Sequence record: LR745208.1
Strand: one strand, 5' to 3'
Length of the DNA stretch: 64,000 nt
The notes under the pieces were generated by a model, which ran no database searches, was not told where the DNA came from, and saw only the letters and a program-made list of their open reading frames with translations. Shown here one piece after another: positions 1 to 41,175 of the stretch. Within the stretch, counting starts at the first letter, position 1. Every line of letters begins with the position of its first letter. The position numbers and the translations under genes were made by a program.

Positions 1-1668
1 TGGGTGAACAAACACGCCATCGATGAGTTGTGGTTTCCCATCCTGCACTTTGACATTACCATCGATATTGGACTTTGTGGTAGCAATTCTGGGAATATCG
101 ATAGGACGTTGAACCCCCCTATGAAGTTGGGCCAAATCGCACAATAGCATTGATGCTGTCGGCCTCCCCGGTCTGGACGCCAACTTGTCAGCATAATCCA
201 GCAGCTCATCCCCCAGAGCCCGTCCCTCCTCTACCAGCCGCTGATTGATATAGGATGGGATAGGCAGAGGACCCAACGTGGACCGGTACACCAGCAATGA
301 CAGGTCCACCAACTTCTCGTACACCGTAATGGGGGACATGGCCTTCAGGACTGTTTCAGCCTTGGCCACCGCTGAAGGCAAATCCCGCTTGACATCCAAT
401 AGGAGTGCCAGCAACTCATTCATGAAATCAAGGTGCAAGTACTGGGATACATTGGGAATGTTCACAGCCCCCAACATAGAGACACCTTCCACAGCCTTCA
501 GGCTGTCTCGGATATGGCACTCCGTGATCTCCCCAATGAGCCTAAGGGCCTCCATGTCATACTCGATTGCCTCACTCTGGCAGATCTGGGCAAGTCTCTC
601 GGCCACCTGTTCCGGGACTACTGGCTTAACAATGAATGCCGGAGCACACCGGCTCAGGATAGTATTTCGCATCTTCTCGGGCTCAGTGGTGCAGAAGATG
701 CAGACCAAGAGCTTGTCCTGAGTGCCGGGATAATTGTCCTCCAGGGGCTTCAGGAGAGCATCCAGGGCGTCCGCAGAGAGACGGTGACAGTTCGATACCA
801 GGATAGACCCTGGGGCCCCATCCGATGTCACGAAAAAATTGTGGGTACCTCCCACGGTCACATCATAGACCATAGTGGGAATAGACTCCACTCTCAGGAC
901 CAGCCGGGCATCCCCCTTTCCCACATGTGTTGCAAGGTAGGTGTAGGCTGGGAGTCCATGGGGGTCTGGTGGATGCCCACGGAATCCTCCTAGCGAGGGG
1001 TCCGGCTCCACAAGCGTGTCATCCGCCACAAGGTCGCCCGCTTCCACCCAACCCCTGTTACTGGTGTAGAACCGGTGATTTGATGTGACGGTAAGGGTCA
1101 CTCCAGTACTGAAAGTCAATGTAAGAGTGTCTCGCACCCCCTGAGAAAACCATCCTTCTAGGGGTGCCCATACGGTCCTATCCGTCGCCAGATCCTGGGA
1201 AAGCACATACCCCTGGTACCTGGATTCAACAAGGGTCCGAATGGACACCGGCCCCTCCGTGGTGACAAGCTGGGCATCCTCAGTGAAGCACTCGTCAAAA
1301 AGGTATAGCTTCCGCTTCCCCGAGAAGGTGCTATACTGGATCTCCTCCACGATCTTACGGATGCTGTCTTTTCCGCTGTTAGTGGCCGCATCAATCTCGA
1401 AGAAGTCAGTCGAGGAGCCATTCTCTAGGAGTGACTTGCAGGAGGCACACTGGTCACAGGGGGCACCATCAACGGGCTGGCCACACAGAAGTGCCCTGGC
1501 CAGGATCCTTCCGAGGGTCGTTTTACCCGACCCAAATGGGCCCGACAACAGGTAGGATTGATGGAACCCGGCCCCAGACTTCACGTATTGCTGGAGGATC
1601 TGGATGGTGCTCTTCTGTCCCAGCACATCAGCATAGGTCCTGGGGCGAAATTTCGTGTCTAAAGACAT
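1..1668 (-). CDS. dnaX: DNA polymerase III gamma/tau clamp-loader subunit containing a mini-intein; 3' end runs off the window (not in ORF track)
   Basis: Manual translation from ATG 1668: MSLDTKFRPRTYADVLGQ, Walker A SGPFGSGKTT, Zn motif LLCG..PCDQCASC, EIDAATNSG, Walker B LYLFDE, then CHRLS..DALLKPLE..IFCTTEPEK..TILSRC. Confidence 0.93.
   Translation of the reverse strand, partial: MSLDTKFRPRTYADVLGQKSTIQILQQYVKSGAGFHQSYLLSGPFGSGKTTLGRILARALLCGQPVDGAPCDQCASCKSLLENGSSTDFFEIDAATNSGKDSIRKIVEEIQYSTFSGKRKLYLFDECFTEDAQLVTTEGPVSIRTLVESRYQGYVLSQDLATDRTVWAPLEGWFSQGVRDTLTLTFSTGVTLTVTSNHRFYTSNRGWVEAGDLVADDTLVEPDPSLGGFRGHPPDPHGLPAYTYLATHVGKGDARLVLRVESIPTMVYDVTVGGTHNFFVTSDGAPGSILVSNCHRLSADALDALLKPLEDNYPGTQDKLLVCIFCTTEPEKMRNTILSRCAPAFIVKPVVPEQVAERLAQICQSEAIEYDMEALRLIGEITECHIRDSLKAVEGVSMLGAVNIPNVSQYLHLDFMNELLALLLDVKRDLPSAVAKAETVLKAMSPITVYEKLVDLSLLVYRSTLGPLPIPSYINQRLVEEGRALGDELLDYADKLASRPGRPTASMLLCDLAQLHRGVQRPIDIPRIATTKSNIDGNVKVQDGKPQLIDGVFVHP
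790..1290 (-). mobile_element. Mini-intein (167 aa, no homing endonuclease) inside DnaX right after the Walker B DE
   Basis: Starts CFTEDAQLVT (Cys1), block B TSNHRF, block F VYDVTVGGTHNFFV, ends ILVSN followed by Cys+1. Confidence 0.9.
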
Positions 1669-9079: not shown

Positions 9080-10216
9080 TTACACCTTTTGTGGTGGACA
9101 CAGTGTCTTCTTGATCCGACCCATGACTGTCTCCACTTCGGAAACCCTCAGGTGGTAATCCTGGGCCATCTGAGCCTTGGTTTTCCCAGCCAGTAGGCCC
9201 TCAAAGATCTCTACTCCACGACTTGGCCCCCGCTTCCGCAGGACTTCCCGAAAATGGTCTACGTCAGACCTTCTCACCAGGACATCCTCGGCGGTGATAT
9301 CTGAAGGGCTAGAGAAGTCAACCACACCAAAACCCTTCCCTCCCAAAGTACCAGAAACATGCTCCCTCACAGGTTCCTCTGCATGGATAGGGATCCAGGA
9401 ATCTCCCAGCTCCAGCTCCCGGTGGGTCTTGGCTCCGGTGAGGGTACGCATGGCAGCATCCGTACCCCAACCACGAATTTCCGTGCAAGCCCTCTGGTAA
9501 GACCAAATCTTGAGGACTGATGCTTGCACATCGTTCCCCTGCCGCAGGTGTTCCCCCAGGGTATCCTTGGCAATCCACCCGGCCATGATGGCTTGGATAT
9601 GATCCTCAATATTGTCCCGAGTTCGGGAATTGCTCATTTTCTTGCCTAGGTGCTGAGTCAGGGTTGGATATACCCATGCCCAGTTTTCCCTAATCCAAGC
9701 TCCGGTCAGGTTCTCTCCTCGCCGAAGCGATGGCAGAGGCTTCCGAAACTTCACCTTTTGGGAAGGGTACCAAATAGAGGCATGAGCAAGCGGGTTGATG
9801 GCCCTTGTCCCCCCCAGCAACTCCAGGGTGGTCTCCCCCTGAAGAGCTAGAAGTGCCCTTGCCAATGGGTTGATGGCGTCCACTCCACCGAGCAGGTCCA
9901 GTAGTACCTCCTGGGTCGGATCCAATACCACTGATACTTCCAGGGTGTGTCCTATCACCTGCTGAACTGGTGGAGGCACATCCAATACCGAAGGCTGGGA
10001 AACCCCCCAACCAGTGACAATTCTGGCAAGTGGATTTGTAGCCTCAGGTCCACCAAGCAGAGTCATGGCTCCCTCCATCTGGAGAGCCAGAACCTCTCGC
10101 ATGAGGGGGTTGATCGCATCTACCCCACCCAGCAAATCCAGGGTGATGTAGGAAGCATCAAGAGCAACAAGTTCAACTGGCCGAACATCCCCGGCGAGGT
10201 TAGTTGAGGAAATCAC
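9080..10216 (-). CDS. Repeat-containing protein with a C-terminal sigma-4-like HTH
   Basis: Four LLGGxxAINPL motifs in the N-terminal half; C-terminal LLAGKTKAQMAQDYHLRVSEVETVMGRIK. Confidence 0.55.
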   Translation of the reverse strand: MISSTNLAGDVRPVELVALDASYITLDLLGGVDAINPLMREVLALQMEGAMTLLGGPEATNPLARIVTGWGVSQPSVLDVPPPVQQVIGHTLEVSVVLDPTQEVLLDLLGGVDAINPLARALLALQGETTLELLGGTRAINPLAHASIWYPSQKVKFRKPLPSLRRGENLTGAWIRENWAWVYPTLTQHLGKKMSNSRTRDNIEDHIQAIMAGWIAKDTLGEHLRQGNDVQASVLKIWSYQRACTEIRGWGTDAAMRTLTGAKTHRELELGDSWIPIHAEEPVREHVSGTLGGKGFGVVDFSSPSDITAEDVLVRRSDVDHFREVLRKRGPSRGVEIFEGLLAGKTKAQMAQDYHLRVSEVETVMGRIKKTLCPPQKV

Positions 10217-10467: not shown

Positions 10468-12234
10468 ATGACTCAACACACCGCCCGCCAAGTCGTAGCA
10501 TCTCTCCCAACCGGGATCAACCTCCAACACCTTGACGTGATGGCCCGCGCCCAATTCATGGAAGGTCTGCTGGGGGCTCCTCCCTTCTCGATCTCCGGAA
10601 AAGCTCACAGTAATGCCCAGTTGCGACAAGTAATTGGGAAGATGATGCTACGAATTGATCCAGAGACGGATGCTACCACCAGCCCATGGGTTTCCATGGA
10701 GAGCCTGGGGCTGTATCGGACCGCCTGGGTCGCCGCCTCCAAGGCTGTAGCCAAGATGGGTCTCGAAGCGGAGGATGTTCTCCTGGCAGACATGGTCAAG
10801 GGAATTGGTCTTGCCAAAAATGGAAGCAAAACTGCGGATCTCACTCTCCAGAATGAGGTAGGTGAAGCTCTTGCTGAGACCAGTCACATTGGTAGCATCT
10901 TCTATGAAGTAGGCAAGCTCCTTCGGGCCAAGAAGAAGATGGTTCTATCGGGTGAAGTTGCCCTTGCTGAGATCCTCAACAAAATTGGCATGGCCGCTCG
11001 TCGTGAAGCAATGGACATTGGCCGCACCCTCATGCGCCGTCGCGTAATGGAGATGGAAAACATTGAGGAAATAGGTAAAGAAACCCTTGGGGATGCCGAT
11101 GACATCAACGCCCCCGAGTGGGAGCAGATCATCTCTCAGGTCATGGGTAACCCGGCACACCCGGCGGCCCAAGAGTTTCTCTCTTGGTTGGTTGAACAAG
11201 CCAAGCGGATGTCTAGCCCTGTAGTGGTGGAATACTTTGAGTCTCTAGCTAGAGGGGAAGACCTTGGCTGGGGAATGGACTCGGTGATTGCTGCCCGTGT
11301 AGGAGTGAATCAGACCCACCTTTCCAATGGGCGCAAGAAGTTCATTGGGGAGATATCCAAAATCCTAACCACCCAAGGTGATGATCGGTTCCCGGAGGTT
11401 GTCAATATGATGTCGGACGCATCCTTCCTTTCTGACTTGTACCGTGGCAAAATTCATGGCCGCATGGCTCGACTCAAGAAAGCTGCTGCTGAGAAGTCCC
11501 TGCGAGGTAGGGTCATCCGTCTTGCCCATGAGAACCCAGCCCTTCGACCCCACCTCCTCCCTCTCCTCAAGCAAGCGGGGGATGTAATCCCCTTCCCAGG
11601 AACCTGGAGGGGCACTCCTGGAAGCAACCCAAACTTGGTGGAGCTACCCCGTAGCCCAATGTCTATTGGGGAGACACTTGAAAACACCAAGGTTCGCGCA
11701 CAGATGTTTGCCAATACTCTTCGGGTCACGGACCTGACCGATGCAGGTAAGCGTGGCAAAAGGGTTTCCCAATTCGCCCTCTATGACCTGGACCGAGCCA
11801 AGGTCAATCAGGAAACTGCCAGCATCTTCCAGAACCTAGTGGAAGCGACCGTTGGTGGCCATGCCACATTCAGCACCCTCCTGCAAATGGCCAAGACTGT
11901 AGCGAACGAACAAGATGCCCTGGCCCCCAAGCTAGAGGTTTCTGCCCTTCGTGGTGTCGATGTGGCACCAGCAGGAGTCAAGGCACTTAGAATTCAAGGG
12001 CAGTTTGTCTCAATCCGAGCAGAGCATGATGACTTCTCGGTAGAAGACACCCACGACCAGAACAACCTGTCCACCTGCATACCAGCCATCAAAGGTGGCA
12101 AGAAGGACATCCCAGTCTTCTATCGCTGGGTCCAAGACAACCAGAGCCAGATCAAGTCCATGACCTTCCAAGAAGTCGTGGGAGCCATGCGAGGTCTTGG
12201 AATCAAATATCACCAGTACTGTGCAATGGACTGA
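10468..12234 (+). CDS. Multidomain phage protein with a sigma-like/HTH region and the LRxxVIRLA..NPALRP tag
   Basis: 588-aa ORF; DSVIAARVGVNQTHLSNGRKK is HTH-like; tag shared with the next gene. Confidence 0.6.
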   Translation: MTQHTARQVVASLPTGINLQHLDVMARAQFMEGLLGAPPFSISGKAHSNAQLRQVIGKMMLRIDPETDATTSPWVSMESLGLYRTAWVAASKAVAKMGLEAEDVLLADMVKGIGLAKNGSKTADLTLQNEVGEALAETSHIGSIFYEVGKLLRAKKKMVLSGEVALAEILNKIGMAARREAMDIGRTLMRRRVMEMENIEEIGKETLGDADDINAPEWEQIISQVMGNPAHPAAQEFLSWLVEQAKRMSSPVVVEYFESLARGEDLGWGMDSVIAARVGVNQTHLSNGRKKFIGEISKILTTQGDDRFPEVVNMMSDASFLSDLYRGKIHGRMARLKKAAAEKSLRGRVIRLAHENPALRPHLLPLLKQAGDVIPFPGTWRGTPGSNPNLVELPRSPMSIGETLENTKVRAQMFANTLRVTDLTDAGKRGKRVSQFALYDLDRAKVNQETASIFQNLVEATVGGHATFSTLLQMAKTVANEQDALAPKLEVSALRGVDVAPAGVKALRIQGQFVSIRAEHDDFSVEDTHDQNNLSTCIPAIKGGKKDIPVFYRWVQDNQSQIKSMTFQEVVGAMRGLGIKYHQYCAMD

Positions 12235-12244
12235 TGAGATACCA

Positions 12245-12619
12245 ATGACAACTCTGCGGTCCAAACTCATCCATCTAGCCCAAGAGAACCCGGCTCTCCG
12301 GCCCCAGTTGCTCCCCCTGCTCAAGGAGGCGGCACCCACTAAGGGGGTGGATGTGGCCAAGGCCATTGAGCTTGGGGCCCTAGCAGAGAGCTATCTTAAT
12401 GCCCTCCAGGCAGCACAGAAGAAGCTGAGTGTGGGACGTGACTTCTACCGTGCCTTGGAGGCATTCAAGCTCCCAGGGATGCAATCCTCTAGTAGCCCAT
12501 TCTACAGCGTGGCCCTGGTCAAGGATGGTAAGCCAGAAGATGTTGGGGATGTAGATGGGTCACTGGTTAAGATGATTCACACGCTCGAACTGGCTGTGAA
12601 AGAGCTCCAGAAGGTCTGA
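12245..12619 (+). CDS. Hypothetical protein with N-terminal LRSKLIHLAQENPALRPQLLPLLK tag
   Basis: ATG 12245 follows the upstream stop; tag nearly identical to an internal segment of the previous gene. Confidence 0.75.
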   Translation: MTTLRSKLIHLAQENPALRPQLLPLLKEAAPTKGVDVAKAIELGALAESYLNALQAAQKKLSVGRDFYRALEAFKLPGMQSSSSPFYSVALVKDGKPEDVGDVDGSLVKMIHTLELAVKELQKV

Positions 12620-15790: not shown

Positions 15791-17022
15791 CCATACAGAT
15801 CCTCCAAGGTAACTCCCTCGATGTTCTCAAGGGTCTACCCGATGGGTCAGTCCATTGCTGTGTGACCAGCCCACCCTATTGGGGGTTACGAAATTACAAT
15901 CATGAGAGTCAGCTAGGGCTGGAGTCCACCCCCGAAAAGTATGTGGCCAACATGGTCCAGGTGTTCCGTGAAGTACGGCGGGTGCTCCGTGAAGATGGTA
16001 CATGCTGGATTAATTTGGGTGACTCATTTTGTAGTACTGATAAGTGGGGTGGGGGAAAAAGTGGTAACAGTGGGAAACATACTGTTGTTTCGGGTACAGG
16101 TGACGTGCCCTCATGGGCTGTGCGGGCACGAAAACCATCGATTGCTGGAATCAAACCCAAGGACCTAGTGGGCATCCCATGGATGGTGGCTTTTGCCCTC
16201 CGGGCAGATGGCTGGTGGCTTCGTAGTGATATTGTGTGGCAAAAACCCAACGTTTTACCAGAATCGGTCACAGACCGTCCAACCAAATCCCACGAGTATG
16301 TGTTCCTGCTAGCCAAGTCAGCCCAATACTTCTACGACATGGATGCCGTGCGGGAGCCCTGTACAATGAAGCCCCAACGGAGGCTCACCCCCATTGAGGG
16401 GAGGCCATCTTTTGGGGGGCATCAAGCCCATACAGAAGCGGGTTACAGGACCCGAGATGAAGTGGGGGTTGATGGGCACCCTGGGGGTCGCAACCTCAGG
16501 GATGTTTGGTCAATCAATACCCGGCCCTACAAGGGTGCCCACTTTGCCACAATGCCCCCCGCATTGGTAGTGCCATGTATCAAGGCAGGGACCAGTGAGA
16601 GGGGTTGCTGCCCATCCTGTGGTGCTCCTTGGGAGCGGCAGGTGGATCGAGAGAAGATCCCAGACCGTCCCGGAAGAGTGCAGGCACGAAAAGGGGATTC
16701 CCTGGCAGATGCTCATGGCCAAGATGGACGGGCTGGTAACAGACACTCCATCCAATCGACCACCACTGGTTGGGAGCCAACCTGTACCTGTTCCCCACAG
16801 GAACCAGTCCCATGTACAGTGCTGGACCCGTTTGGGGGATCCGGGACAACTGCTGAAGTGGCTAGGTCCCTGGGACGAGACTGCATCCTTATCGAGCTCA
16901 ACCCTGACTACATAGATCTCGCTAAGATCCGGCTATATGGGGAGAGGGAACCCGAAAGGGCTGATCTTGAGGCTACCTCTGATCACGAAGGTCCATCGCT
17001 ATTGGAAATGTTGGGGATGTGA
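15787..17022 (+). CDS. Site-specific DNA methyltransferase (N4C/N6A) with a Zn-ribbon insert
   Basis: VTSPPYWG, RPTKSHEYVFLL, HFATMP, CPSC..CTC insert, VLDPFGGSGTT. Confidence 0.93.
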   Translation: MTIQILQGNSLDVLKGLPDGSVHCCVTSPPYWGLRNYNHESQLGLESTPEKYVANMVQVFREVRRVLREDGTCWINLGDSFCSTDKWGGGKSGNSGKHTVVSGTGDVPSWAVRARKPSIAGIKPKDLVGIPWMVAFALRADGWWLRSDIVWQKPNVLPESVTDRPTKSHEYVFLLAKSAQYFYDMDAVREPCTMKPQRRLTPIEGRPSFGGHQAHTEAGYRTRDEVGVDGHPGGRNLRDVWSINTRPYKGAHFATMPPALVVPCIKAGTSERGCCPSCGAPWERQVDREKIPDRPGRVQARKGDSLADAHGQDGRAGNRHSIQSTTTGWEPTCTCSPQEPVPCTVLDPFGGSGTTAEVARSLGRDCILIELNPDYIDLAKIRLYGEREPERADLEATSDHEGPSLLEMLGM

Positions 17023-17990
17023 TGTCCCAACCCTCTCTTCTACTAGTTGCGGGTACGGATGAGCACCGTCGTCGGATGTTCACGCAAGCCACCATCACCA
17101 AGTTCCAAGCAAAGGGGTATTCCATCTTCCCTGTTGATGCGGAGGACCATGACTCCATCACCAACCTGATTGCGACCACAGGGGTTCTTTTCTCTGGCAA
17201 CACATTGGCTGTAATTGCCAATGCTGACAAGCTCCTCCTGGAGGATGTATCCAGCCACATGTTGGATCCCAACCCCGCCCTGACTCTTCTGTTGGTGTCA
17301 GAGAGTGCCCAGCCCAAAGGTGAGGTTGTGTCCCAGGTTCCCAAGGCACAGACCCGTATTTTCACGCTTCCCGCCTTCTACAAGATGGAGAGTTTTGCAG
17401 CCGAGTATGCCGTGGAGGTTGCCAAGCAACATGGGATGACCCTGTCTCCGGAGATCGCCAAGGCACTGGTCCAAAAGGTTGGTTCAGACCTTGGGGTCAT
17501 CTTCTATGAGGTGGGGAAGGTTGTGCAGCTGGCAAAGGTTCTTGGGATCAACGTGATTGAGCCCATACATGTGAAAGAAGCCATGGCCCCCCTTATGGAG
17601 TTGGATGGGTCGGCCCTGGTGGCTGCCTTGGGAACCCGAAGAATTGCCCTGGTTGCGAGTGAGTTGCAGCGATACTATCAGTCGAAACGAGGGGACCCAA
17701 CCATAGAAGTGTGTGGTAAGGTGCTGTCACCGAACATCATCAAATGGCTCCAGGCAGCGCACATGCACGAGAAGGGCCTCCCAGCAGGGGCCGCAGCAAG
17801 CCGGGTGGGTGCAAACCCTTGGTATTGGGAACACAATATCCTACCTCAAGCGAGAGCCTGGGGGGTCACAGGTTGCAAGCAATTGTTGCATGTCATAGCC
17901 CGGTCTCAAGTGGCTGTCTTCGAGGGTGCCTTGAAACCATGGGGGATTCTGGAAACAGGCATTCTAAGGGCAATTCGCGTATCGTCATAG
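17019..17990 (+). CDS. DNA polymerase III delta-like clamp-loader subunit
   Basis: ALVQKVGSDLGVIFYEVGKV lid motif; about 320 aa; clustered with the HolB-like gene. Confidence 0.7.
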   Translation: MMSQPSLLLVAGTDEHRRRMFTQATITKFQAKGYSIFPVDAEDHDSITNLIATTGVLFSGNTLAVIANADKLLLEDVSSHMLDPNPALTLLLVSESAQPKGEVVSQVPKAQTRIFTLPAFYKMESFAAEYAVEVAKQHGMTLSPEIAKALVQKVGSDLGVIFYEVGKVVQLAKVLGINVIEPIHVKEAMAPLMELDGSALVAALGTRRIALVASELQRYYQSKRGDPTIEVCGKVLSPNIIKWLQAAHMHEKGLPAGAAASRVGANPWYWEHNILPQARAWGVTGCKQLLHVIARSQVAVFEGALKPWGILETGILRAIRVSS

Positions 17991-18063: not shown

Positions 18064-20979
18064 ATGCTCGACGGTTCTTCGTTTCCAAAAATTTCCCATC
18101 AAGATGTATCCGAGACCGGGGCACACACCCCACAGCCTGTCACAAATGTGCTCTCAATGTCCCCCGTGTTCCATCTTGGAATTGGGGACCCCCTAGATGA
18201 TGTGAAGTATGAGAAGCGACGTTGTTTGATCTCAGAGAAGAGTGGGGCGGTCGTCTTTCAGATGGATGATGTGGAGATCCCCTCAGGGTGGTCTCAATTA
18301 GCCACAGACATTGTGGCCTCAAAATACTTCCGTAAGGCCGGAGTCCCACAAGCTGACGGAACTCTTGGACCAGAGAAGTCGGTCAAGCAGGTGATTCATC
18401 GAGTAGCCTCTACGATAGCGCAAGAGGGCTTCAACCAAGGCTACTTCACTTTGGAGCAGAAGCAGGTTTTTGAGCGGGAACTGAAGTACCTGCTCGTGCA
18501 CCAATATGGGGCCTTCAACTCTCCAGTGTGGTTCAATGTTGGGATGTACCACTCCTACGGTATTGATGGCCAGGGGGGGAATTTTGCGTGGGACTTCGAG
18601 AGTGGGTCTGTGAAGAAAATGGACCGGGCCTATGTCAGGCCACAGGCATCTGCGTGCTTCATCAATCGGGTGGATGACTCTATTGATTCGATTGCAGACA
18701 GTCTCAAGGCAGAAATGCGTCTCTTCAAGTACGGGAGTGGTGTGGGGTCGGACTTCAGTGCAATCCGCTCGAAGTATGAGGTGCTATCTGGTGGGGGCTA
18801 CTCTTCGGGGTTGATGGCTTTTCTGCGTGTGTTTGATAGAGCCGCGGATTCCATGAAGTCTGGGGGGACCACACGTCGGGCGGCCAAGATGGTGATTTTG
18901 CAGGCGGACCATCCTGAGATCGAGGACTTCGTCACTTGGAAGTCCAAAGAGGAGAACAAAGCCCGGGTGCTCCTAGCTGCCGGGATTGGACTAGACGCGG
19001 ATGGAAAACCTGACTTCAACGGGGAAGCCTATGCAACCATCTCAGGCCAGAACTCAAATAACAGCGTGCGGGTCAGTGACGAGTTCATGCGGGCAGTGGA
19101 GAAGGACGAGGACTGGAACCTTCGGGCCCGTACCACAGGAGAGGTAATCAAGACCATCAAAGCCAAGGATCTCTGGCAGAAAATCTGCCAGTCAGCTTGG
19201 GAGTGTGCGGATCCAGGCCTCCAGTATGACACCACCATCAATGATTGGCACACCTGTGCAGAAACGGGCAGGATCAATGCCAGCAATCCATGTAGTGAGT
19301 TCATTTTCTTGGATAACACGAGTTGCAATTTGGCCAGCTTGAACCTGACCAAGTTCCTTAAACGGAGCGAGGATGGTAGCCTCACCTTCGATGTCAAGCT
19401 ATACCGGGAGGCCGCCCGAATCTTCATCATTGCCCAAGAGATCCTTGTGGATCTAGCTTCCTACCCGACAGAGGAAATAACCCGCAACACGCATGATTTT
19501 CGCCCCCTGGGTCTGGGATATGCGAATCTAGGAACACTGCTTATGATGCTTGGGCTGCCTTACGATTCCTACGATGGGAGGTATGTCGCCGGGGCACTCA
19601 CGGCCATCATGCACAGCAAAGCCTATGCGACGTCCGCCGAGCTAGCAAAGTTAAAGGGGGCATTCCCGAAGTACCAAACCAACTTGGTCCCAATGTCCAG
19701 GGTGGTGCAGAAGCATAGTCATGCAATTGATGACCTGACCAAAGTGCAGCCGATCAATAGTTCGAGGGCATCTCTCAAGTTTTCCTACCTGGGTAGGGCT
19801 GCTAGGGAGGATGCAGACAACATGTTGAAGCTGGGAGCCACTTATGGGTATCGCAATGCTCAAGTGACAGTCCTGGCCCCGACAGGAACAATTGGCTACC
19901 TGATGGATTGTGACACCACAGGTATTGAGCCCGACTACTCCCTCGTGAAGTACAAGAAGCTGGCAGGTGGGGGGTCTATGAAGATCGTCAACCAGTCGGT
20001 CCATCTGGCGTTACATGAGCTAGGGTATGGGGATGAGGCGGTTGATGCCATCGTGGCTCATATTGATGCGACAGGAAACGTAATGGGTGCCCCACATTTG
20101 GATGTGGATGACTATCCGGTTTTTGCTTGTGCTCAAGGGGTTCTAGCCCTTCGTCCCATGGCCCACCTGGAAATGATGGCTGCTACCCAGCCATTCCTCA
20201 GTGGGGCTATTTCCAAGACCTGCAACATGCCCAACAACTCCACCGTCGAGGAGGTATCGGAGATTTACAGGGCTGGATGGAAGCTTGGTTTGAAGGCAGT
20301 GGCCCTGTATCGAGATGGTTGCAAAGCATCCCAGCCACTTACAGACAAGAAGAAAACACCAACCACATCTCTTCCTACGGCGGTAGCAGCGGCTACTTCT
20401 GTCGTAGAAAATCGCCCCACCCGAGTTCGTCTACCCAGGCAGCGAAAGGGGTATACCCAGGAAGCCAAGATTGCAGGCCAGAAGCTGTACCTGCATACCG
20501 GTGAATACCCCAACGGTAATCTGGGGGAGATCTTCATTGACGTCTCCAAGGATGGGGCTGCTCTGCGGGCCATGTTGAACAGTTTTGCAATTGCCATCTC
20601 TGTTGGGTTGCAGCATGGAGTGCCTTTGGATACCTATGTGAACCAGTTTACATTCACCCGTTTCGAGCCAGCCGGTCCTGTTCAATTTGATGACCATATC
20701 AAGACCTGCACTTCATTGTTGGATTACATCTTCCGGCACCTTGCAGTGAGATATCTGGATCGAGAGGATCTGGCACACATTAAGCCTAGTGAGCTGGCAG
20801 CCGAACTAACGGAGGCGGAGGAGTCAGAGCCTTCCCCAGCCCCCACCAAAAGGAACTCCATTCCTCCAGCGGCCACAAGTTCCGACGCCCCCTTCTGTGA
20901 CCAATGTGGGCATTTGACGGTTCGTAATGGGACCTGTTACCGGTGTTCCAATTGTGGGAGTAGTATGGGGTGTTCTTAG
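18064..20979 (+). CDS. nrdJ: Class II (B12-dependent) ribonucleotide reductase with TSCPD domain and C-terminal Zn ribbon
   Basis: FNSPVWFNVG, QASACFI, NASNPCSEF, SCNLASLN, VLAPTGTI, AISKTCN, KAVALYRDGCK, CxxC..CxxC tail. Confidence 0.96.
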   Translation: MLDGSSFPKISHQDVSETGAHTPQPVTNVLSMSPVFHLGIGDPLDDVKYEKRRCLISEKSGAVVFQMDDVEIPSGWSQLATDIVASKYFRKAGVPQADGTLGPEKSVKQVIHRVASTIAQEGFNQGYFTLEQKQVFERELKYLLVHQYGAFNSPVWFNVGMYHSYGIDGQGGNFAWDFESGSVKKMDRAYVRPQASACFINRVDDSIDSIADSLKAEMRLFKYGSGVGSDFSAIRSKYEVLSGGGYSSGLMAFLRVFDRAADSMKSGGTTRRAAKMVILQADHPEIEDFVTWKSKEENKARVLLAAGIGLDADGKPDFNGEAYATISGQNSNNSVRVSDEFMRAVEKDEDWNLRARTTGEVIKTIKAKDLWQKICQSAWECADPGLQYDTTINDWHTCAETGRINASNPCSEFIFLDNTSCNLASLNLTKFLKRSEDGSLTFDVKLYREAARIFIIAQEILVDLASYPTEEITRNTHDFRPLGLGYANLGTLLMMLGLPYDSYDGRYVAGALTAIMHSKAYATSAELAKLKGAFPKYQTNLVPMSRVVQKHSHAIDDLTKVQPINSSRASLKFSYLGRAAREDADNMLKLGATYGYRNAQVTVLAPTGTIGYLMDCDTTGIEPDYSLVKYKKLAGGGSMKIVNQSVHLALHELGYGDEAVDAIVAHIDATGNVMGAPHLDVDDYPVFACAQGVLALRPMAHLEMMAATQPFLSGAISKTCNMPNNSTVEEVSEIYRAGWKLGLKAVALYRDGCKASQPLTDKKKTPTTSLPTAVAAATSVVENRPTRVRLPRQRKGYTQEAKIAGQKLYLHTGEYPNGNLGEIFIDVSKDGAALRAMLNSFAIAISVGLQHGVPLDTYVNQFTFTRFEPAGPVQFDDHIKTCTSLLDYIFRHLAVRYLDREDLAHIKPSELAAELTEAEESEPSPAPTKRNSIPPAATSSDAPFCDQCGHLTVRNGTCYRCSNCGSSMGCS

Positions 20980-21024: not shown

Positions 21025-21513
21025 ATGCCACTGGTGTTGGTCTTACAAGGCCTAGTCCATTGTTCTCATGAGGGACCCACTGTCGAAACAGATGGGTCCA
21101 CTCAACCAATAGACCTAACCCCCTTTGCTGGTCAGGAAGTCGTTTTCATGGCCTGCCATTTCCCCAGGGAGCCAATTCAGGCACGGTGGGGATTGGGTAG
21201 CTGTTATTGGACCCCAGTAGGCACCTGCCCGGCTGGACACCATCTGGACCCGGAGCTAATGTGCTCCTGGGCGGGGGAGGGGAAGTTAGTCCCCCATGGA
21301 CCTAATTGGTGGGCGGTGGAAACCTCCGGTGGCTTCCCACCACTCAATCAATTGGAGGGACATAATTGTAAATTGGCCATGTGTGTCAAGTCCCCAAAGG
21401 TACGGGACGAGCAGCACGTCTCCCTGGATATTGAAGGCCTCAAGCAAACCATGCAAAGTCTCAAGGATATTCAGGGAGACCTGATTGCAATGCTAGATAG
21501 GGCTAGGAAATGA
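21025..21513 (+). CDS. hypothetical protein
   Basis: 162-aa ORF overlapping the RecD2 start (ATGA). Confidence 0.6.
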   Translation: MPLVLVLQGLVHCSHEGPTVETDGSTQPIDLTPFAGQEVVFMACHFPREPIQARWGLGSCYWTPVGTCPAGHHLDPELMCSWAGEGKLVPHGPNWWAVETSGGFPPLNQLEGHNCKLAMCVKSPKVRDEQHVSLDIEGLKQTMQSLKDIQGDLIAMLDRARK

Positions 21514-24299
21514 CCGATACCTATTTTTCGGGCCGGGTCAACTCGGTCATCTTCGCCAACGAAACCAAGGCATTCTATGTTCTCCGGATGCTACTGGACG
21601 TGGAGGCGAATCCTAATCCTATTGAGGAGTGGATGGGCTCCATAGAACCCCTTGTGACGGTTTGTGGTGAGATCCCAGGGGTCCATGTTGACATTGGGGC
21701 ATGGTTTGGGTTTGAAGGGGACTGGGGAAATCATCCCAAATATGGTCGCCAGATCAAAGTTACCCGGGCCCCCGTTCTGAAGGGGGTCTGGGATGAGGAT
21801 ATGTGTGAGAAGATCCTCACCTCCCAGGGTATTGGAATTGGCATTGCAGCGAGGATACGGACACAGTTTGGGAAGACTATGGCCGAAGCTCTCACGGATG
21901 TGGCTCAGATCAGCACGGTGCCAGGACTCACGGCACTTACAGCCGAGAACATTGTTCACAAGTGGAAGATGGCAAGAGCCCATTTCCTCACGTTGGAGTT
22001 CCTTGGGGACTTAGGACTCCCCCAGGGCAAAATCAGGCATATATGGTCCACATTTGGGGACACTGCAAAGGATGTCCTGTCAGTCAATCCTTGGGCACTG
22101 GTGCAGATTGACGGTATCAGTTTTGGTGATGCTGACGCCGTTGGTATGCGGTTGGGTCTGGACTGCTCCCCTGCCAACCCTGCCCGAGTCGAAGGGGCTG
22201 TTCTTCATGCTTCGCGGGCAGCCAAGGGGTTCGGTAACCTCTACATGTCAGCGGGGGAGCTACGGGCTACTGCCTGGACCTTAGACCCCAATTTTGCCGA
22301 CAAGGACCTTGTGGCCTCCGTCAAAGCATTGGTGGGTCAGGGTCTTTTGGTAGTAGACAAAACTACCCTCCCAGGAACCATGGCAATCTATGACCCTTGG
22401 AGTTACAAGCTGGAGGACACCTCAGCCACAATTCTCAAGGAGAGAGGGCTACAGGCGGTCATATCCCCGGAAAAGTCAGCCCAGTATGTCAAGTCTCTGA
22501 TAGGGGAAGAGAACGGTCAGGCATCCTTGCGGGATGCTGGGGCCCAATACTTGGCACAGGTCGAGGCCACAGGTGGTATCACCCTATCGGAAAAACAGAA
22601 GCTTGGGGTAATCAATGCCATTACCGAGCCCATTTCGATCATCACGGGCTTACCTGGATCGGGTAAAACAACTTCACTCCGTATGGTGCTCATGCTTCTG
22701 CATGAGATGGGGGTGCACCCGTGGATGGTGGCTCCAACAGGTATCGCAGCCAAGCGTGTGGAGTCCTTGACTGGGGTTAAGGCGTACACAATCCATCGGG
22801 CATTTGGGGCAATGGGGGCAGACAGTGAGACCCGTAAGGCTACTTATGCTGGGGTGGTAGGCCAGCGGGATGAGGACTCAGCATCCTCCGACGGCTCAGG
22901 AGAGGAGTGGAAGTATGGCCCTGGAAAACCACATCCCGCCGAGATGATCGTGATTGACGAGTGTTTTCACTACAAGCAATCCATTCTAACAGAGTCGGGC
23001 TGGGAGTACATTGGGAAAGTCGTTGAGCAACGGCTACCCGTGCGGGTCTGGGCTAGAAATCCGAGTAGCGGGATGCTGGAGCTGAAACCAATTCTAAGGT
23101 ACCTAAAAAATCCCTATCCTGAGTCTGGCCTACTGAAACTAACCGTGGGGGCAAGCCATAGCTCACGGTCGGGAAGGTCTATTCGATGCACTCCAGAACA
23201 TAAGGTACTGACTCCTTCGGGGTATCAGAATGCTGGAGACTTGCGCATAGGAGACGACGTGGTTGTTAGGGGTGTTCAGCCTGACACAACAATTAGCCAA
23301 GTGTCGGGAGTTACAAAGTTTTCTCCTAAGCGTACATACAACCATGTGTATGACCTGGAAATTCAGGACCATCATAACTATGTCGCTGGGAATGTCATCG
23401 TTTCCAATTGTAGTATGGCAGATCAGCATGTGCTCTACCGGATTCTGACCTGTACCCGACCGGATGCCCGTCTGGTGTTTGTGGGGGACGCCGCTCAGCT
23501 GCCCTCTGTGGGGCCTGGGAACGTGCTTCGGGATTTGGTCGCCTCCGGGGTCTATCCAACCGTGGCACTTACGGAGATTTTCCGCCAGAATGAAGCCTCT
23601 CCCATCATCAAAGCCGCCCATGAAATTCATCGTGGGGTGGTACCCGACGCCCCAATAGGATCGAACTTCTGCCTCATAGAGGAGCATAATGAAGAGGAAA
23701 TCGCCAACAAGATCATTGTGCTAGCGGAGAAGCTCTATCAGGCACGAAAAAATTTCCAGGTCATGACCCCCCGCCATGCAGGGCCTATAGGGGTGACAGC
23801 CCTCAATGCCAGACTGAGGGAACTCCTCAACCCGAAGCAGCCCTCTCTGCAAGAGATCAAGCTGGGGAAGGATGTGTTGAGGGAGGATGACCGGATCATG
23901 GTGGTCAAAAACAACTACCAGTTAGGCATCTTCAATGGTGACACCGGGAAGATATCCAATATTGATCGGAAATCCAAGACGGTGACTATCAAGATTCATG
24001 GACCCCCAATGATTCTCGTCCAGATTCCTTTTGAGAAGTGCTACACTCTGTTGAGATTGGCCTATGCAGTTACAGTCCATCGATGTCAGGGTCAGGAGAT
24101 GGACATTGTCGTGATGCCTATCATTGATTCCTTTGCCCACCAACTACAGCGTAATCTCTTCTACACAGCGATCACCAGAGCCAAAGAGAAGGTGATCCTT
24201 ATTGGGTCACATTCTGCAATGTCCCGAGCGGTGCTCAACAATCAAGAAGATGTTAGGAACACACTGTTCCGGAACAGACTTCGAGCGAAGGTAGAGTAG
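21510..24299 (+). CDS. recD2: RecD2-like SF1B helicase containing a mini-intein
   Basis: N-terminal OB/HhH region, Walker A TGLPGSGKTT, APTGIAA, TIHR, VIDE, FVGDAAQLPSVG, EIFRQ, LAYAVTVHRCQG, YTAITRA. Confidence 0.93.
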   Translation: MTDTYFSGRVNSVIFANETKAFYVLRMLLDVEANPNPIEEWMGSIEPLVTVCGEIPGVHVDIGAWFGFEGDWGNHPKYGRQIKVTRAPVLKGVWDEDMCEKILTSQGIGIGIAARIRTQFGKTMAEALTDVAQISTVPGLTALTAENIVHKWKMARAHFLTLEFLGDLGLPQGKIRHIWSTFGDTAKDVLSVNPWALVQIDGISFGDADAVGMRLGLDCSPANPARVEGAVLHASRAAKGFGNLYMSAGELRATAWTLDPNFADKDLVASVKALVGQGLLVVDKTTLPGTMAIYDPWSYKLEDTSATILKERGLQAVISPEKSAQYVKSLIGEENGQASLRDAGAQYLAQVEATGGITLSEKQKLGVINAITEPISIITGLPGSGKTTSLRMVLMLLHEMGVHPWMVAPTGIAAKRVESLTGVKAYTIHRAFGAMGADSETRKATYAGVVGQRDEDSASSDGSGEEWKYGPGKPHPAEMIVIDECFHYKQSILTESGWEYIGKVVEQRLPVRVWARNPSSGMLELKPILRYLKNPYPESGLLKLTVGASHSSRSGRSIRCTPEHKVLTPSGYQNAGDLRIGDDVVVRGVQPDTTISQVSGVTKFSPKRTYNHVYDLEIQDHHNYVAGNVIVSNCSMADQHVLYRILTCTRPDARLVFVGDAAQLPSVGPGNVLRDLVASGVYPTVALTEIFRQNEASPIIKAAHEIHRGVVPDAPIGSNFCLIEEHNEEEIANKIIVLAEKLYQARKNFQVMTPRHAGPIGVTALNARLRELLNPKQPSLQEIKLGKDVLREDDRIMVVKNNYQLGIFNGDTGKISNIDRKSKTVTIKIHGPPMILVQIPFEKCYTLLRLAYAVTVHRCQGQEMDIVVMPIIDSFAHQLQRNLFYTAITRAKEKVILIGSHSAMSRAVLNNQEDVRNTLFRNRLRAKVE
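22962..23408 (+). mobile_element. Mini-intein (149 aa) inside RecD2 right after the Walker B DE
   Basis: CFHYKQSILT (Cys1), block B TPEHKV, block F VYDLEIQDHHNYVA, ends VIVSN followed by Cys+1. Confidence 0.92.
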
Positions 24300-26706: not shown

Positions 26707-27372
26707 ATGCTGGTTCTTGGTTTGGATCCCTCACTAACTTCGTACGGGTATAGTCTGCACAATACACAGGCATCCGCAGGAGCCGATCGATGTGTCCTGA
26801 AAGGTCAGCTGTCCACCCCTGCCTCCCAGCTATTCCTTGACAGATACATCACCTTCAGAGAATTCCTTCGATCCCTCATACAGGAACACAAGCCTGACAA
26901 GATCGGGATTGAGTCTCCCATCTTTGGGGAAATTTTTTCACCCGGAGCCTGGGGGCTGTTCCTCTACTCGAATGAAGCGTTCAAAGAGGAGAAGATGGAT
27001 GTGGTGTACTTTTCACCCCCTCAGATCAAGATGCACGCCCGCGAGAGTCTCAAGCGCCCGGATGGCTGGAAGATGATGAAGGGGGACATGGTTTCAGCAG
27101 CCAAAGAGGACACTGGTATAAAGACTAAGTGGTCCCATGATGCCGCGGATGCATTCCTTTGTGCACGTCTGGCTGGCAGGTTTTGGGAATATCTATCTGG
27201 TAGCATTTTGATTACAGACTTGACCCCCACAGAGCGTAAACTGTTCACTGAGGTCCATACGTTCTCCAAAGGCAAGAATGCAGGTCAGACTGAAAAGACG
27301 GGCATCATCTTTAGAGAGAATGAGAGGTTCTATCGTTGGTCACAGACGGTAGAGAGTGGACCCAAGAAGTGA
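26707..27372 (+). CDS. RuvC-like Holliday junction resolvase
   Basis: VLGLDPSLTSYG, KIGIESP, SHDAADA. Confidence 0.85.
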   Translation: MLVLGLDPSLTSYGYSLHNTQASAGADRCVLKGQLSTPASQLFLDRYITFREFLRSLIQEHKPDKIGIESPIFGEIFSPGAWGLFLYSNEAFKEEKMDVVYFSPPQIKMHARESLKRPDGWKMMKGDMVSAAKEDTGIKTKWSHDAADAFLCARLAGRFWEYLSGSILITDLTPTERKLFTEVHTFSKGKNAGQTEKTGIIFRENERFYRWSQTVESGPKK

Positions 27373-27397
27373 CCAATCCAAAGGACAACCCAATACC

Positions 27398-28642
27398 ATG
27401 GCAGCTGCAAAGAAGACTACGACCACCAAGGGAACCAGTGCCCTCACTCGTGCAACATCCGCTCTCACCACTCTCCTCAAGGAGGATCATGTTGTCCCCT
27501 TGAATGAGAGTCTTCTGAAGGAGTCCATGCCCCACATTCCTAGCGGGTCCATTATCGTGGACTACGCAATTGGTGGAAAGGCTAACAAGCATGGTGTTGC
27601 CCCCTGTCCGGGTTTGCCTCGGGGTCGTATCACACAGCTGTATGGGGCCAATGGGGCAGGCAAGACAACCCTAGCCCTTGCTGCCGCAGCCGCCATTTGT
27701 AAGGCTGGGGGGACCTGTGCCTACATTGACTGGGAGCATGAGGTAGAGCCCCGTTATGCAGCTACCTTGGGGGTACCCATTCAGGACGCATCTAAGTTTG
27801 TGCTGATACAGCCAGACACCCTGGAGCAGGGCATGAAGGCGATGGTCATGTACATCCGTGAGGGCGTGGACCTGATCGTACTGGACTCCGTGGGTGCCGG
27901 TGTGCCGGAGGACCTGTACAATCAGGCAGAGGACGAAGAGGGAAAGGCTTTGCGTCCGGGGATTGTGGCAGCCAAGTGGTCACAGTTTCTCCCCAAGATC
28001 AAGGGAGTGATGGCCAAGAGCAACTCAACCCTCCTGGCGATCTCACAGCTTCGCAAGACCATGGCATCCATGAATGGTGGAGGACCCGAGTCTGCCCCTC
28101 AGGGTGGGGAGGCATGGAAGTTCTACACATCGGTACGGATGTCCCTACGTGTCTTCCAGAAGGAGAAGGGCAAGCAGTTTGATCAGCTCTCGGGCAAGAT
28201 TGAGGAGAAGGTGGTAGGCACCATCGTTGTCCTGAAGCTGGATAAGTGCAAGGTCAGTGACTCTGTCAACAATGAGTTCAAGTTCTATCTCCGCTCAGGG
28301 CAGGGGATCGACAATGCCCGTTCGGTGGTGGAACTGGCTATTGCCCACAAGATCATTCAAAAGAGTGGGGCATGGTTCACGTGGCCCAATAGCCCCAAGG
28401 GGGATCTCAAGCTGTGTGGAATGGATGGCTTTCTGAAGGCGATCAATGAGGACCCCAAGGCGCTGCCAATGTTGTTTGCTCAGGTGAGCCCCAAGTTGTC
28501 GGCTGTCCCATCTGCACAGGCAATGGCTGAAGCGGAGGAAGAGATCCCAGCAATTGATGAGGATGAGCTCTTCGCAGATGTGCCGAAGACCAAGGCTGAA
28601 AAGGAAAAGAAGGAAGACCCATCGGAAGTCGAGGGGGACTAA
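27398..28642 (+). CDS. recA: RecA recombinase
   Basis: GLPRGRITQLYGANGAGKTT, IDWEH, LIVLDSVGA, ISQLR, GGEAWKFYTSVRM. Confidence 0.95.
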   Translation: MAAAKKTTTTKGTSALTRATSALTTLLKEDHVVPLNESLLKESMPHIPSGSIIVDYAIGGKANKHGVAPCPGLPRGRITQLYGANGAGKTTLALAAAAAICKAGGTCAYIDWEHEVEPRYAATLGVPIQDASKFVLIQPDTLEQGMKAMVMYIREGVDLIVLDSVGAGVPEDLYNQAEDEEGKALRPGIVAAKWSQFLPKIKGVMAKSNSTLLAISQLRKTMASMNGGGPESAPQGGEAWKFYTSVRMSLRVFQKEKGKQFDQLSGKIEEKVVGTIVVLKLDKCKVSDSVNNEFKFYLRSGQGIDNARSVVELAIAHKIIQKSGAWFTWPNSPKGDLKLCGMDGFLKAINEDPKALPMLFAQVSPKLSAVPSAQAMAEAEEEIPAIDEDELFADVPKTKAEKEKKEDPSEVEGD

Positions 28643-39738: not shown

Positions 39739-41175
39739 CTATACGTGTTTATCCCGTGAGGGACGAACGGGTATCGGTTGTTTTGAAGCTATGCGGGTTC
39801 TGATCTTCTCAGTAACGTCACAGTAAGCTCCGGGCTCATCGGTGTGAGCTCCAACTAACAGGGATCTCGGTGATCTGAACCGCAAGCGGTGCCTTTCATC
39901 CAAGATCGCTTTCACCGATTTCGGTGGGGTCTTTAGGTTGATGTGTTTTTCCTCAGAACGTCTGAGCACATTCAACCCCCCAACGAAATCTGCATGACTC
40001 TTTCTGCCACAACTCTGGCAGACAAACTTTACTCCCCTACGGTTACTCCGGGAAACGAAATGACACGAAGGACACTCCTGACTCGTATAAGCCGGATTCA
40101 CCTTGAGGGTGACGGCCTTCCTCTCCAAGCTCGATTGGAGAGCCCTGTAGGCAAACCTTTTTGATCCTGGTGCACTGGAAAGATCCAAATCCTCAACCAC
40201 AAAGGTCGTGTTTGGGTGGCTCTTGACGAGCTGGTTGGCTATCGTGTTCGTTGCCGTCTTGATCTGGCCGGAGAGCCTCCGCTCTAAGGCCCAAAGGCGT
40301 CTGGAGTCCTCCAGGAACCCTTGTCGTTTCCTATTAGCTCGGGCCGTATCTACCCGCTTCTTCAGTCGGTTGAACTTGGCTTTGAATCGTTGACCGTAGA
40401 GGGTTCCACTTGAGGTTGCTGCCAACACATTCAAGCCAACATCAATCCCCAACTTGCCAGCCGAACCATCGAGAACCGGATCTTCTGACTTCTCAGAGAA
40501 TTGGAAGGTCCAATGACCGTCTGGGCGCTTCGCGGCCAGGACGGTCAGCTGGACATCCTTGCGTTTACGAAGAAAGGGGGACTCTTTGAGGGGAAGGAAG
40601 ATGGTTTTGTAGCGAGTCAGGGAGGAGAATTTGAGCCACCAACCGTGAAAATGAGATGCTCCGGATTCCCTGAATGTGCAAGTCATCTCCGTGAATCGCA
40701 GGGGGAATCGTTCACTGATGGTTGGGGGATTCCCGACAATTTCTGGATCCCAAACCCAAGACCAATACAAGTCAACGAGTTCTTGAGAGATCGTCCCCTT
40801 CCCGAATTTCCCTCCGTGGGTCAGCCGGTACTTCCCAATTGTGTAGAGCTGAAGGGCATCAAGATCGTTGTAGGTTCCGTCTTCCTTAAGACCCGTGATC
40901 TTGGCCTTGAGGGTTCGACCGTAAACTCCGTTGACCCAACCATGAACCAACTCGACTGCTTGAGCTTGAGCATTTTTGACCAATTGGGAAGAGAGTGTCT
41001 CTGAGGTTGGGAAGTAGGATTTCCGACCTGAGGGGAGGACGTTGAAGATTCGGTTGGATACCATGAGGGTGACACACGATTGGACGTACTGGATATGCTC
41101 CGCATGGAGTAAGTCTAGTTGGTGAACCTTCCCCGAATTGGTTTCGGGGTCCAATAATGTGATCCTGGCCTTCAT
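39739..41175 (-). CDS. tnpB: Full-length TnpB-like RNA-guided endonuclease (tnpB2)
   Basis: LGIDVG, VVEDLD, AYTSQECPSC..CQSC, HADFVGGLN; D-E-D triad intact. Confidence 0.9.
   Translation of the reverse strand: MKARITLLDPETNSGKVHQLDLLHAEHIQYVQSCVTLMVSNRIFNVLPSGRKSYFPTSETLSSQLVKNAQAQAVELVHGWVNGVYGRTLKAKITGLKEDGTYNDLDALQLYTIGKYRLTHGGKFGKGTISQELVDLYWSWVWDPEIVGNPPTISERFPLRFTEMTCTFRESGASHFHGWWLKFSSLTRYKTIFLPLKESPFLRKRKDVQLTVLAAKRPDGHWTFQFSEKSEDPVLDGSAGKLGIDVGLNVLAATSSGTLYGQRFKAKFNRLKKRVDTARANRKRQGFLEDSRRLWALERRLSGQIKTATNTIANQLVKSHPNTTFVVEDLDLSSAPGSKRFAYRALQSSLERKAVTLKVNPAYTSQECPSCHFVSRSNRRGVKFVCQSCGRKSHADFVGGLNVLRRSEEKHINLKTPPKSVKAILDERHRLRFRSPRSLLVGAHTDEPGAYCDVTEKIRTRIASKQPIPVRPSRDKHV

Follow-up and report, generated by a model that had tools for sequence, protein, structure and literature searches.

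A short peptide tag shared by unrelated proteins of a huge-phage clade: a candidate address for the prohead interior

Introduction

Bacteriophage T4 packages the ADP-ribosyltransferase (ART) Alt and its internal proteins through N-terminal targeting sequences (PMC9026906). The capsid-targeting sequence (CTS) of T4, found on IPI-III and in the propeptide of Alt, is ∼10 residues long, strictly N-terminal and cut by gp21 at L/I-x-E, and its cargo, an ADP-ribosyltransferase and anti-defence proteins, is ejected with the DNA (PMC9026906). Here, we analyse a stretch of 64,000 nucleotides from sequence record LR745208.1 (the window), in which two unrelated proteins share a peptide of 24-27 residues (the tag), and we describe the recurrence of this tag throughout one clade of huge phages.

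Docking elements of other kinds are found in a phage scaffold and in bacterial compartments. The scaffolding protein of phage P22 ends in a small basic helix-turn-helix domain through which it binds the inner face of the coat protein, and the disordered, charged carboxysome proteins CsoS2 and CcmM link cargo and shell through repeated short binding peptides. Encapsulation peptides are short helical or linear elements, placed at the N- or C-terminus behind poorly conserved linkers, that bind the inner face of the shell (PMC4594438). Peptides of encapsulins and of bacterial microcompartments (BMC) are also treated in PMC8346489 and PMC12339742, and BMC peptides are known to drive the condensation of their cargo. 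Finally, packaging and injection have been inferred for the effector domains that polyvalent proteins carry (Iyer et al. 2017; PMC5512222).

A peptide tag on unrelated proteins of a 485-kb genome

The window covers bases 230169-294168, minus strand, of a 485,040-bp contig (G000) held in IMG/VR as a virus record (JGI Ga0209518_1000006; CheckV completeness 92%). Positions given without the name of a contig or locus are those of the window. A sequence-only reading of the window had claimed that a 26-residue peptide is common to two unrelated proteins, and we found both copies where it had placed them. Copy 1 (SLRGRVIRLAHENPALRPHLLPLLKQA; 11497-11577, +) makes up residues 344-370 of a 588-aa open reading frame (ORF; 10468-12234, +), and copy 2 (TLRSKLIHLAQENPALRPQLLPLLKEA; 12251-12331, +) begins at residue 3 of a 124-aa ORF (P0001; 12245-12619, +), whose remaining 95-aa cargo part belongs to no known family. 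When the two proteins are compared by BLASTP, the alignment is limited to the tag stretch, where 19 of 28 residues are identical (E 2e-10), far above chance.

A motif search over the whole proteome had been proposed as the check, and its outcome was clear-cut. A profile of the tag (consensus TLRSKLIRLAHENPALRPQLLPLLKEA; core of ∼24 residues, LRxxxIRLAHxNPxLRxxLLPLL) found exactly 11 copies in the six-frame translation of G000, all at E <= 4.4e-15 and cleanly apart from the background, the next match having an E-value of 0.2. Ten of the 11 begin 1-3 residues past an ATG, the copy of the 588-aa ORF alone being internal. The cargo parts behind the tags (65-322 aa) have no significant similarity to each other (best pairwise E 0.056), and they matched no Pfam or PHROG family, save for one match to a PHROG of unknown function. 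Moreover, when the proteins of a rough 577-gene set of G000 were compared all against all, the tag was the sole short-motif cluster with more than two members; the other four were single pairs.

The codons of the 11 copies indicate what has been conserved. Nine columns are invariant (L2, R3, A10, P14, R17, L20, L21, P22 and L23), whereas third codon positions vary at 26 of 26 sites. Mean identity is 71% for nucleotides vs 78% for amino acids, and synonymous codon differences (599) exceed the non-synonymous ones (313). Since third positions are saturated while the peptide is kept, selection acts on the peptide and not on a DNA repeat.

Distribution, position and predicted fold

A scan of IMG/VR returned 55 six-kb loci from ∼35 large viral contigs (up to 536 kb) that together hold 100 tag copies. 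We counted 6-11 tags in each of five large relatives of G000 (G001-G005; 266-536 kb), of which three are complete and have terminal repeats; the major head proteins of the five are 75-94% identical to that of G000. Against 1.84 billion representative proteins, the HMMER profile gave 4,103 matches at E <= 0.001, of which 682 reach E <= 1e-10. By comparison, 185,579 prokaryote species, each represented by a single genome, yielded two matches, both on short contigs of metagenome-assembled genomes. The tag region had no match in Pfam-A 2025 or NCBIfam 20, and no family was common to the 68, 79 or 88 tagged proteins scanned; PHROGs v4 gave nothing over the tag in the G000 copies, and PDB sequences gave chance matches only (best E 0.41). 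Our literature searches found no paper describing such a tag. A portable targeting peptide is, as a kind of element, already known; what appears to be undescribed is this particular tag family, together with its size, its occurrence at both termini and in proteins with several copies, and the short motif that accompanies it (see later in the text).

Tag position was assessed on 104 distinct copies: 76 are N-terminal, 9 lie at the extreme C-terminus, 14 are internal and 5 are ambiguous, with gene starts in the relatives set at the nearest start codon, so that a few of the N-terminal copies may be internal or C-terminal. In the nine C-terminal cases, the protein ends at most 12 residues past the tag, and in five of them within 1-3 residues of LLPLL, which sets the core at ∼24-25 residues. 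Conservation ceases at the end of the tag; A-A/G predominates at positions 27-28, and GG is not conserved. The combination of a short terminal peptide, a variable linker and unrelated cargo, by which encapsulin and BMC peptides are recognized, is thus also that of the tag.

Many tagged proteins carry more than one copy. All of the best 150 representative HMMER matches have 2-5 tags by a strict count, with up to seven matched stretches, and in 38 of these 150 a tag stands at both ends. Their linkers have a median length of 158 aa and contain 15.5% K, 11.2% E and 8.1% D, a charged composition from which we consider them probably disordered. At the other extreme, a natural protein of 63 aa consists of two tags back to back.

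The tag is predicted to form helix-break-helix, with the break at N-P, and may be regarded as a small autonomous helix-Pro-kink-helix (helix-turn-helix) module. An AlphaFold2 (AF2) model of the 63-aa protein is a compact four-helix bundle (predicted local distance difference test, pLDDT, 85; predicted template-modelling score, pTM, 0.63) that aligns over its full length with generic four-helix bundles (Z 4.3-6.2), a weak hint that two tag hairpins can pack together. Tags also resemble each other more within a genome (identity 0.739) than between genomes (0.658; reached in 0 of 2000 label permutations), and they carry genome-specific consensus residues. This likeness would fit co-evolution with a genome-encoded partner.

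Cargo families, and gain and loss of the tag

Most tagged cargo belongs to no known family. The identifiable part includes ART-PolyVal in two proteins (above the Pfam cut-off, with the tag at residues 2-28 followed by the ART domain), RelA_SpoT in three, 2H-SAK phosphoesterase in three, WGR in six, DUF2958 in three, DUF5710 in two and DUF7717 in three, as well as solenoids of the YdcK/bactofilin type. An RNA_ligase protein bears the tag as a C-terminal extension, and a pentapeptide-repeat protein has it at both ends. By family assignment, this identifiable cargo is effector-like and resembles the effectors of biological conflicts.

Orthologues with and without the tag were found for two families. 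The RNA ligase of the window (45178-46206, +) is untagged, whereas a 52%-identical orthologue in a relative (L048:1209-2366) has the C-terminal tag extension. The two tagged ART proteins are 63-65% identical to the ART-PolyVal homologue of G000 (G000 209853-210704), which has IKVAFRHLLQGAKT in place of the tag; its N-terminus (MAHENGP...IKVAFRHLLQGAKT) has the look of a tag that has decayed or been shortened. Judging from these orthologues, one and the same cargo gains and loses the tag. We also noted that a tagged 149-aa gene overlaps the start of this ART-PolyVal homologue by 34 nt (G000 209437-210704). The sequence-only reading had gone on to propose a modular address used by diverse cargo proteins. 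The occurrence on many unrelated proteins, the selection at the peptide level and the orthologues with and without the tag agree with that proposal; of the cargo it had named, no zincin was seen.

Two further modules were drawn from tagged proteins of the relatives (L026:4801-5613, L036:2989-3579, L057:1531-3075, L062:2998-5220 and L054:2992-3549). One is a stretch directly past the tag, (M/L)EFxTxEAL(K/R)KYLKEHPxADKSxHxV. The other, G.GY...G.CYYETGD.ADRCYVT..GGPGGQ, is a C-terminal motif that contains Cys and is akin to the C-terminal extension described later for the 588-aa family.

A shorter companion motif

The list of shorter recurrent tags that had been drawn up for the window was upheld in part. 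The heptamer RQVVASL is present, as read, in both the 588-aa ORF (10486-10506, +) and a C39-like ORF (53412-53432, -), which are its only two copies in G000. Their flanks are without similarity, and in 45% of trials residue-shuffled window proteomes have one or more 7-mers in common; the match is therefore attributed to chance, and the C39-like peptidase is not a cargo of this tag. EKTAAS, NKTAG and TKLAS proved to be the internal repeat of one ORF (51925-53310) and were discarded as tags. The (K/R)(V/T/L)A pattern was too loose as written, but it contains a real motif in the narrower form [KR]VAxR[HYF][LF]. This form has nine matches in the rough G000 proteome vs 0.07 expected, with none of 300 shuffles above one, figures that are somewhat inflated because the pattern was defined after examples had been seen. 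The controls support the enrichment: the reversed pattern has no match in the G000 proteome, and in the independent loci of the relatives the count is 18 vs 0.

In these loci, the short motif is found mostly near the termini of unrelated proteins, with six copies 5-15 residues from the start of the protein and five 2-6 residues from its C-end, and it has the extended consensus S-A-x-R-V-A-S-R-F/Y/H-L-x-A-K/R. Within the window, LRVAGRYL (41953-41976, +) is found 12 residues from the start of a 454-aa ORF (41917-43281), EKVAFRHL (41671-41694, -) lies inside a 183-aa ORF (41314-41865), and the near miss TVARRFL (53379-53399, -) belongs to the C39-like ORF (53307-53930), 23 residues before its C-end. 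Further sites are at G000 209853-210704 and in loci L023, L034, L046, L064, L073, L076, L077, L095, L109, L112 and L148. The first of these is the ART-PolyVal orthologue of G000, on which the short motif stands in place of the long tag. Moreover, in G001-G005 genes with the short motif adjoin a conserved gene that is located downstream of the capsid gene, at a distance of a few kb, and in G000 a motif-bearing gene (G000 326796-327530) follows the same conserved gene. The short terminal motif may belong to the same address system as the tag.

Tagged genes and the head module

In G000, PHROG scans place a head module at 307-319 kb, with the order portal protein (PHROG 1e-33), head-maturation protease (474 aa; phrog_18299, 2e-10), an unknown 422-aa protein, the tagged 134-aa protein P0002, an unknown 228-aa protein and the HK97-type major head protein (291 aa; G000 317910-318782; phrog_2522, 2e-47). 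In this order, the gene for P0002 falls between those for the protease and the major head protein, and 6 kb downstream there is another tagged gene. The order protease, 422-aa protein, 228-aa protein and capsid protein is kept in the five relatives, and in one of them (G002) four tagged genes are found inside the head module. These head genes were located by neighbourhood look-up and PHROGs; the Terminase_6N, Terminase_6C, Phage_capsid, Peptidase_S78 and Peptidase_S77 profiles found nothing in G000, and a search with PF03420 was empty, its controls being equally silent. A shared promoter was also sought, and the regions upstream of tagged and structural genes showed no strongly enriched 8-mer.

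Interpretation and alternatives

An element that is modular, independent of its position in the protein, selected as a peptide and present on unrelated proteins looks like a docking or address element. The tag, whose conservation and distribution are described above and whose cargo is identified in part, bears this signature on thousands of unrelated proteins of one phage clade. We propose that it binds one common multivalent partner. This partner could be a site in the procapsid interior or on a scaffold, it could consist of further tag copies, two hairpins packing into a four-helix bundle, or both could apply. Where 2-7 tags are joined by long, disordered K/E/D-rich linkers, the protein would act as scaffold or cross-linker, and enzymes with a single tag would be drawn into the same assembly, among them the ADP-ribosyltransferase, RelA/SpoT, 2H phosphoesterase, RNA ligase, pentapeptide-repeat and WGR proteins and the putatively sigma-like 588-aa protein. 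The short motif [KR]VAxR[HYF]L can replace the tag on the same cargo. The assembly would most likely be the prohead core, and it is our speculation that the capsid then encloses the cargo and delivers it along with the DNA; any cleavage of the tag would be equally speculative.

To the claim that the tag recruits cargo into the prohead core or capsid interior we assign a rough probability of 45%. This destination is favoured by the use of either terminus, as in encapsulation peptides, by the ART and other effector-type cargo, as in the CTS and Alt of T4, and by the scaffold-like charged proteins with several tags; the tagged genes in the head module make it plausible as well. Several observations weigh against it. 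The head module contains no tagged gene in four of the six genomes, all of them relatives, so the link between tag and head that is seen in G002 and G000 is suggestive and not consistent. Nine of the 11 tagged genes of G000 lie outside the module, including both of those in the window, which sit among methylase and replication genes. A cleavage site is not conserved either, since Glu at tag position 26, the putative P1 residue of L24-K25-E26, occurs in only 28 of the 76 N-terminal copies, the others having T, A, K, Q or S. The four-helix bundle is a single-sequence prediction with generic structural matches, and old intragenomic shuffling could equally yield the likeness of tags within a genome. 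Finally, part of the identified cargo acts on nucleic acids in the cell (RNA ligase, 2H phosphoesterases, the possibly sigma-like protein and DNA-mimic-like pentapeptide proteins).

The last point leads to the main rival of the capsid destination, in which the same stickers and spacers serve a cytoplasmic assembly, namely a factory, condensate or compartment for replication, transcription or RNA repair. Besides the nucleic-acid cargo and the location of most tagged genes outside the head module, it would account for the multi-tag, disordered and charged character of the top matches and for the predicted packing of two tags, and a precedent exists in the condensation driven by BMC encapsulation peptides (PMC12339742). 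However, tagged genes are embedded in the head module of two genomes, and effectors such as ART are classically virion-borne. Moreover, the 291-aa major capsid protein is not phiKZ-like, and no homologue of a nucleus shell turned up, although none was sought. We regard a cytoplasmic destination as possible and, on this balance, rather improbable. It is unlikely that the tag is instead the binding motif for a single enzyme hub, such as a sliding clamp, RNA polymerase, chaperonin or a protease adaptor that reads it as a degron. The late sigma factor of T4 and its co-activator bind the clamp through terminal motifs, one tag carrier is possibly sigma-like, and genes for a clamp loader and a chaperonin are present in the window. 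The tag is terminal or internal, independent of position, and clamp-binding and ClpX-recognition motifs, too, are carried by unrelated proteins at one terminus or the other. Yet 24 conserved residues with a predicted fold far exceed such linear motifs, inspection shows no fit of the tag to the clamp consensus QLxLF/QLxLxL, and proteins made of charged linkers and up to seven tags make no sense as clients of a hub.

The predominance of N-terminal copies could also point to a leader or propeptide that a peptidase removes, either of the double-glycine type, with the C39-like ORF of the window as the enzyme, or of the T4 type, cut by the head protease; the sequence-only reading had invoked the latter. 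Past the tag stand small residues (A-A/G), and in part of the copies L-K-E resembles the L-x-E site of T4 (PMC9026906). This explanation is very improbable, and a T4-like N-terminal propeptide is not supported: of the 104 copies, 9 are C-terminal and 14 internal, the tag is repeated 2-7 times within proteins, and most N-terminal copies lack the P1 Glu. For a double-glycine leader, one expects a GG, GA or GS end and a C39 domain on an ABC exporter, whereas the C39-like ORF stands alone, with no ABC exporter seen beside it, and its C39 matches are below the Pfam gathering score; cargo of up to hundreds of residues is likewise unlike bacteriocins. The last alternative, that the copies have no common function and are remnants of duplicated or mobile DNA or mere chance, is effectively refuted by the profile E-values, by the saturation of synonymous sites around a preserved peptide with nine invariant columns, and by the occurrence of the tag in 4,103 protein clusters from many genomes.

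Nearly all huge phages are uncultivated, and the function of most of their genes is not known. A conserved and readily recognized tag would sort many of these proteins, from >4,000 clusters, into one functional class; among the marked clusters are alarmone synthetase-like and DNA-mimic-like proteins as well as ADP-ribosyltransferases and RNA-repair enzymes. If the destination is indeed the capsid, the tag would provide a sequence-based catalogue of the proteins that are delivered together with the DNA as infection begins. It would also be the second natural portable packaging signal after that of T4, working from either terminus, and a candidate tool for loading foreign proteins into capsids. 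We put forward more tentatively, as a somewhat doubtful extension, a clade-wide address code in which the short motif can replace the hairpin sticker, disordered multi-sticker proteins would form an internal scaffold or condensate in the prohead, and dozens of single-sticker counter-defence enzymes would be taken up by this body and then injected; for uncultivated huge phages, sequence could then directly reveal the ejected proteome, across >4,000 protein clusters. With any other destination, the tag would still define a new multivalent assembly system in phage-infected cells.

Comparison with known targeting systems

As with the T4 CTS, which directs its carriers into the prohead core, the tag is a short peptide on unrelated proteins that include an ADP-ribosyltransferase. 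However, the two have no sequence similarity; the tag, at 24-27 residues and with a predicted fold, is also used C-terminally, internally and in several copies, without a conserved cleavage site. With encapsulin and BMC peptides it shares the use of either terminus, the variable linkers and the diverse cargo, and the encapsulin shell has the HK97 fold. Those peptides serve cellular organelles and not virions, whereas here the shell would be a genome-filled capsid, and the consensus of the tag is unlike the GSL-type cargo-loading peptide of encapsulins.

The C-terminal domain of P22 scaffolding protein is comparable to the tag in its predicted helix-turn-helix with conserved R3, R8, R17 and K25, and the charged multi-tag proteins are scaffold-like. 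It differs in being found on one protein instead of many cargos, and the tag has no similarity to any PDB chain. The architecture of CsoS2 and CcmM resembles that of the proteins with 2-7 tags, without homology between them and in another organelle. Polyvalent and MuF proteins likewise combine a conserved 'delivery' part with variable effectors, ART-PolyVal, RelA/SpoT and 2H phosphoesterase being common to both sets (PMC5512222). There, however, 2-15 effector domains are joined in one giant polypeptide encoded by phages or conjugative elements, or effectors are fused to a MuF head domain of ∼100-300 aa (PMC5512222), whereas the tagged proteins are separate small effectors with a 27-aa tag and mostly one identifiable domain.

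The tagged proteins of the window and their neighbourhood

The 588-aa protein consists of an all-alpha N-terminal domain (residues 1-343), the tag and an unrelated C-terminal domain (371-588). In an alignment of 12 members of its family, the tag directly follows the conserved all-alpha domain of ∼340 aa in all 12 and is the best-conserved stretch. One member stops at the tag and others run into a Cys-containing extension; the protein of the window has a different C-terminal domain of 218 aa. In its AF2 model (mean pLDDT 60; 70-90 in the N-terminal domain), the tag forms the end of helix 329-355 and helix 357-371. The ORF has no Pfam or PHROG match, and Foldseek found nothing in the PDB at E <= 0.001 for the model. 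With VIA-align, residues 231-317 were weakly similar to sigma region 4 (Z 3.4-4.3) and residues 510-588 gave weak ferredoxin-like matches. The description of this protein as a sigma-like factor is possible and not established, given the weakness of the region-4-like helices in the model. We also considered the family as a universal hub and rejected this, as the full-length protein is present in one of the five large relatives. The N-terminal domain (10825-10947, +) shares with the ORF at 17019-17987 (17421-17543, +) a local similarity of 41 residues around GxIFYEVGK (39% identity; pairwise E 5e-05). IFYEVGK was dismissed as a further tag, being a short local similarity between two ORFs.

The 124-aa ORF most likely starts at the ATG at 12245 (MTTLRSKL...) and not at the TTG at 12197, which would give 140 aa; the ESM Atlas offered no usable lead for this protein. 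Divergently from the 588-aa gene, an ORF of 378 aa (9080-10216, -) encodes four LLGGxxAxNPLA(R/H) peptides and an HTH-like (helix-turn-helix) C-terminal stretch, and it has no Pfam or PHROG match. Beside the C39-like gene, a 461-aa ORF (51925-53310, -) contains repeated K-T/L-A...GLYG units. Residues 17-62 of the latter match, with 57% identity, the core of a relative's 115-aa protein (L049:1910-2254), which is tagged at both ends.

The ends of G000 carry a 126-bp exact direct repeat (G000 9-134 and 484915-485040), which suggests a circular or terminally redundant assembly, though the record is classed as 'linear'; contigs near-identical to G000 are present in a groundwater metagenome. In the window, the genes for a RecD2-like helicase and a clamp loader (DNA polymerase III delta'-like), at 21510-24299 (+) and 1-1668 (-), each have an intein/HINT insertion, and the 1229-aa gene past the capsid gene of G000 holds LAGLIDADG domains. 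A TnpB/Cas12f-like gene (OrfB_IS605 and TNB domains) is located at 39739-41175 (-), and at least one further copy flanks the head module. Finally, other genes of the window code for a class II ribonucleotide reductase, RecA, the RNA ligase, a chaperonin of the Cpn60/TCP-1 type and RtcB (loci 18064-20979, 27356-28642, 45178-46206, 57303-58850 and 62141-63307), and such a large set of auxiliary genes is typical of huge phages.

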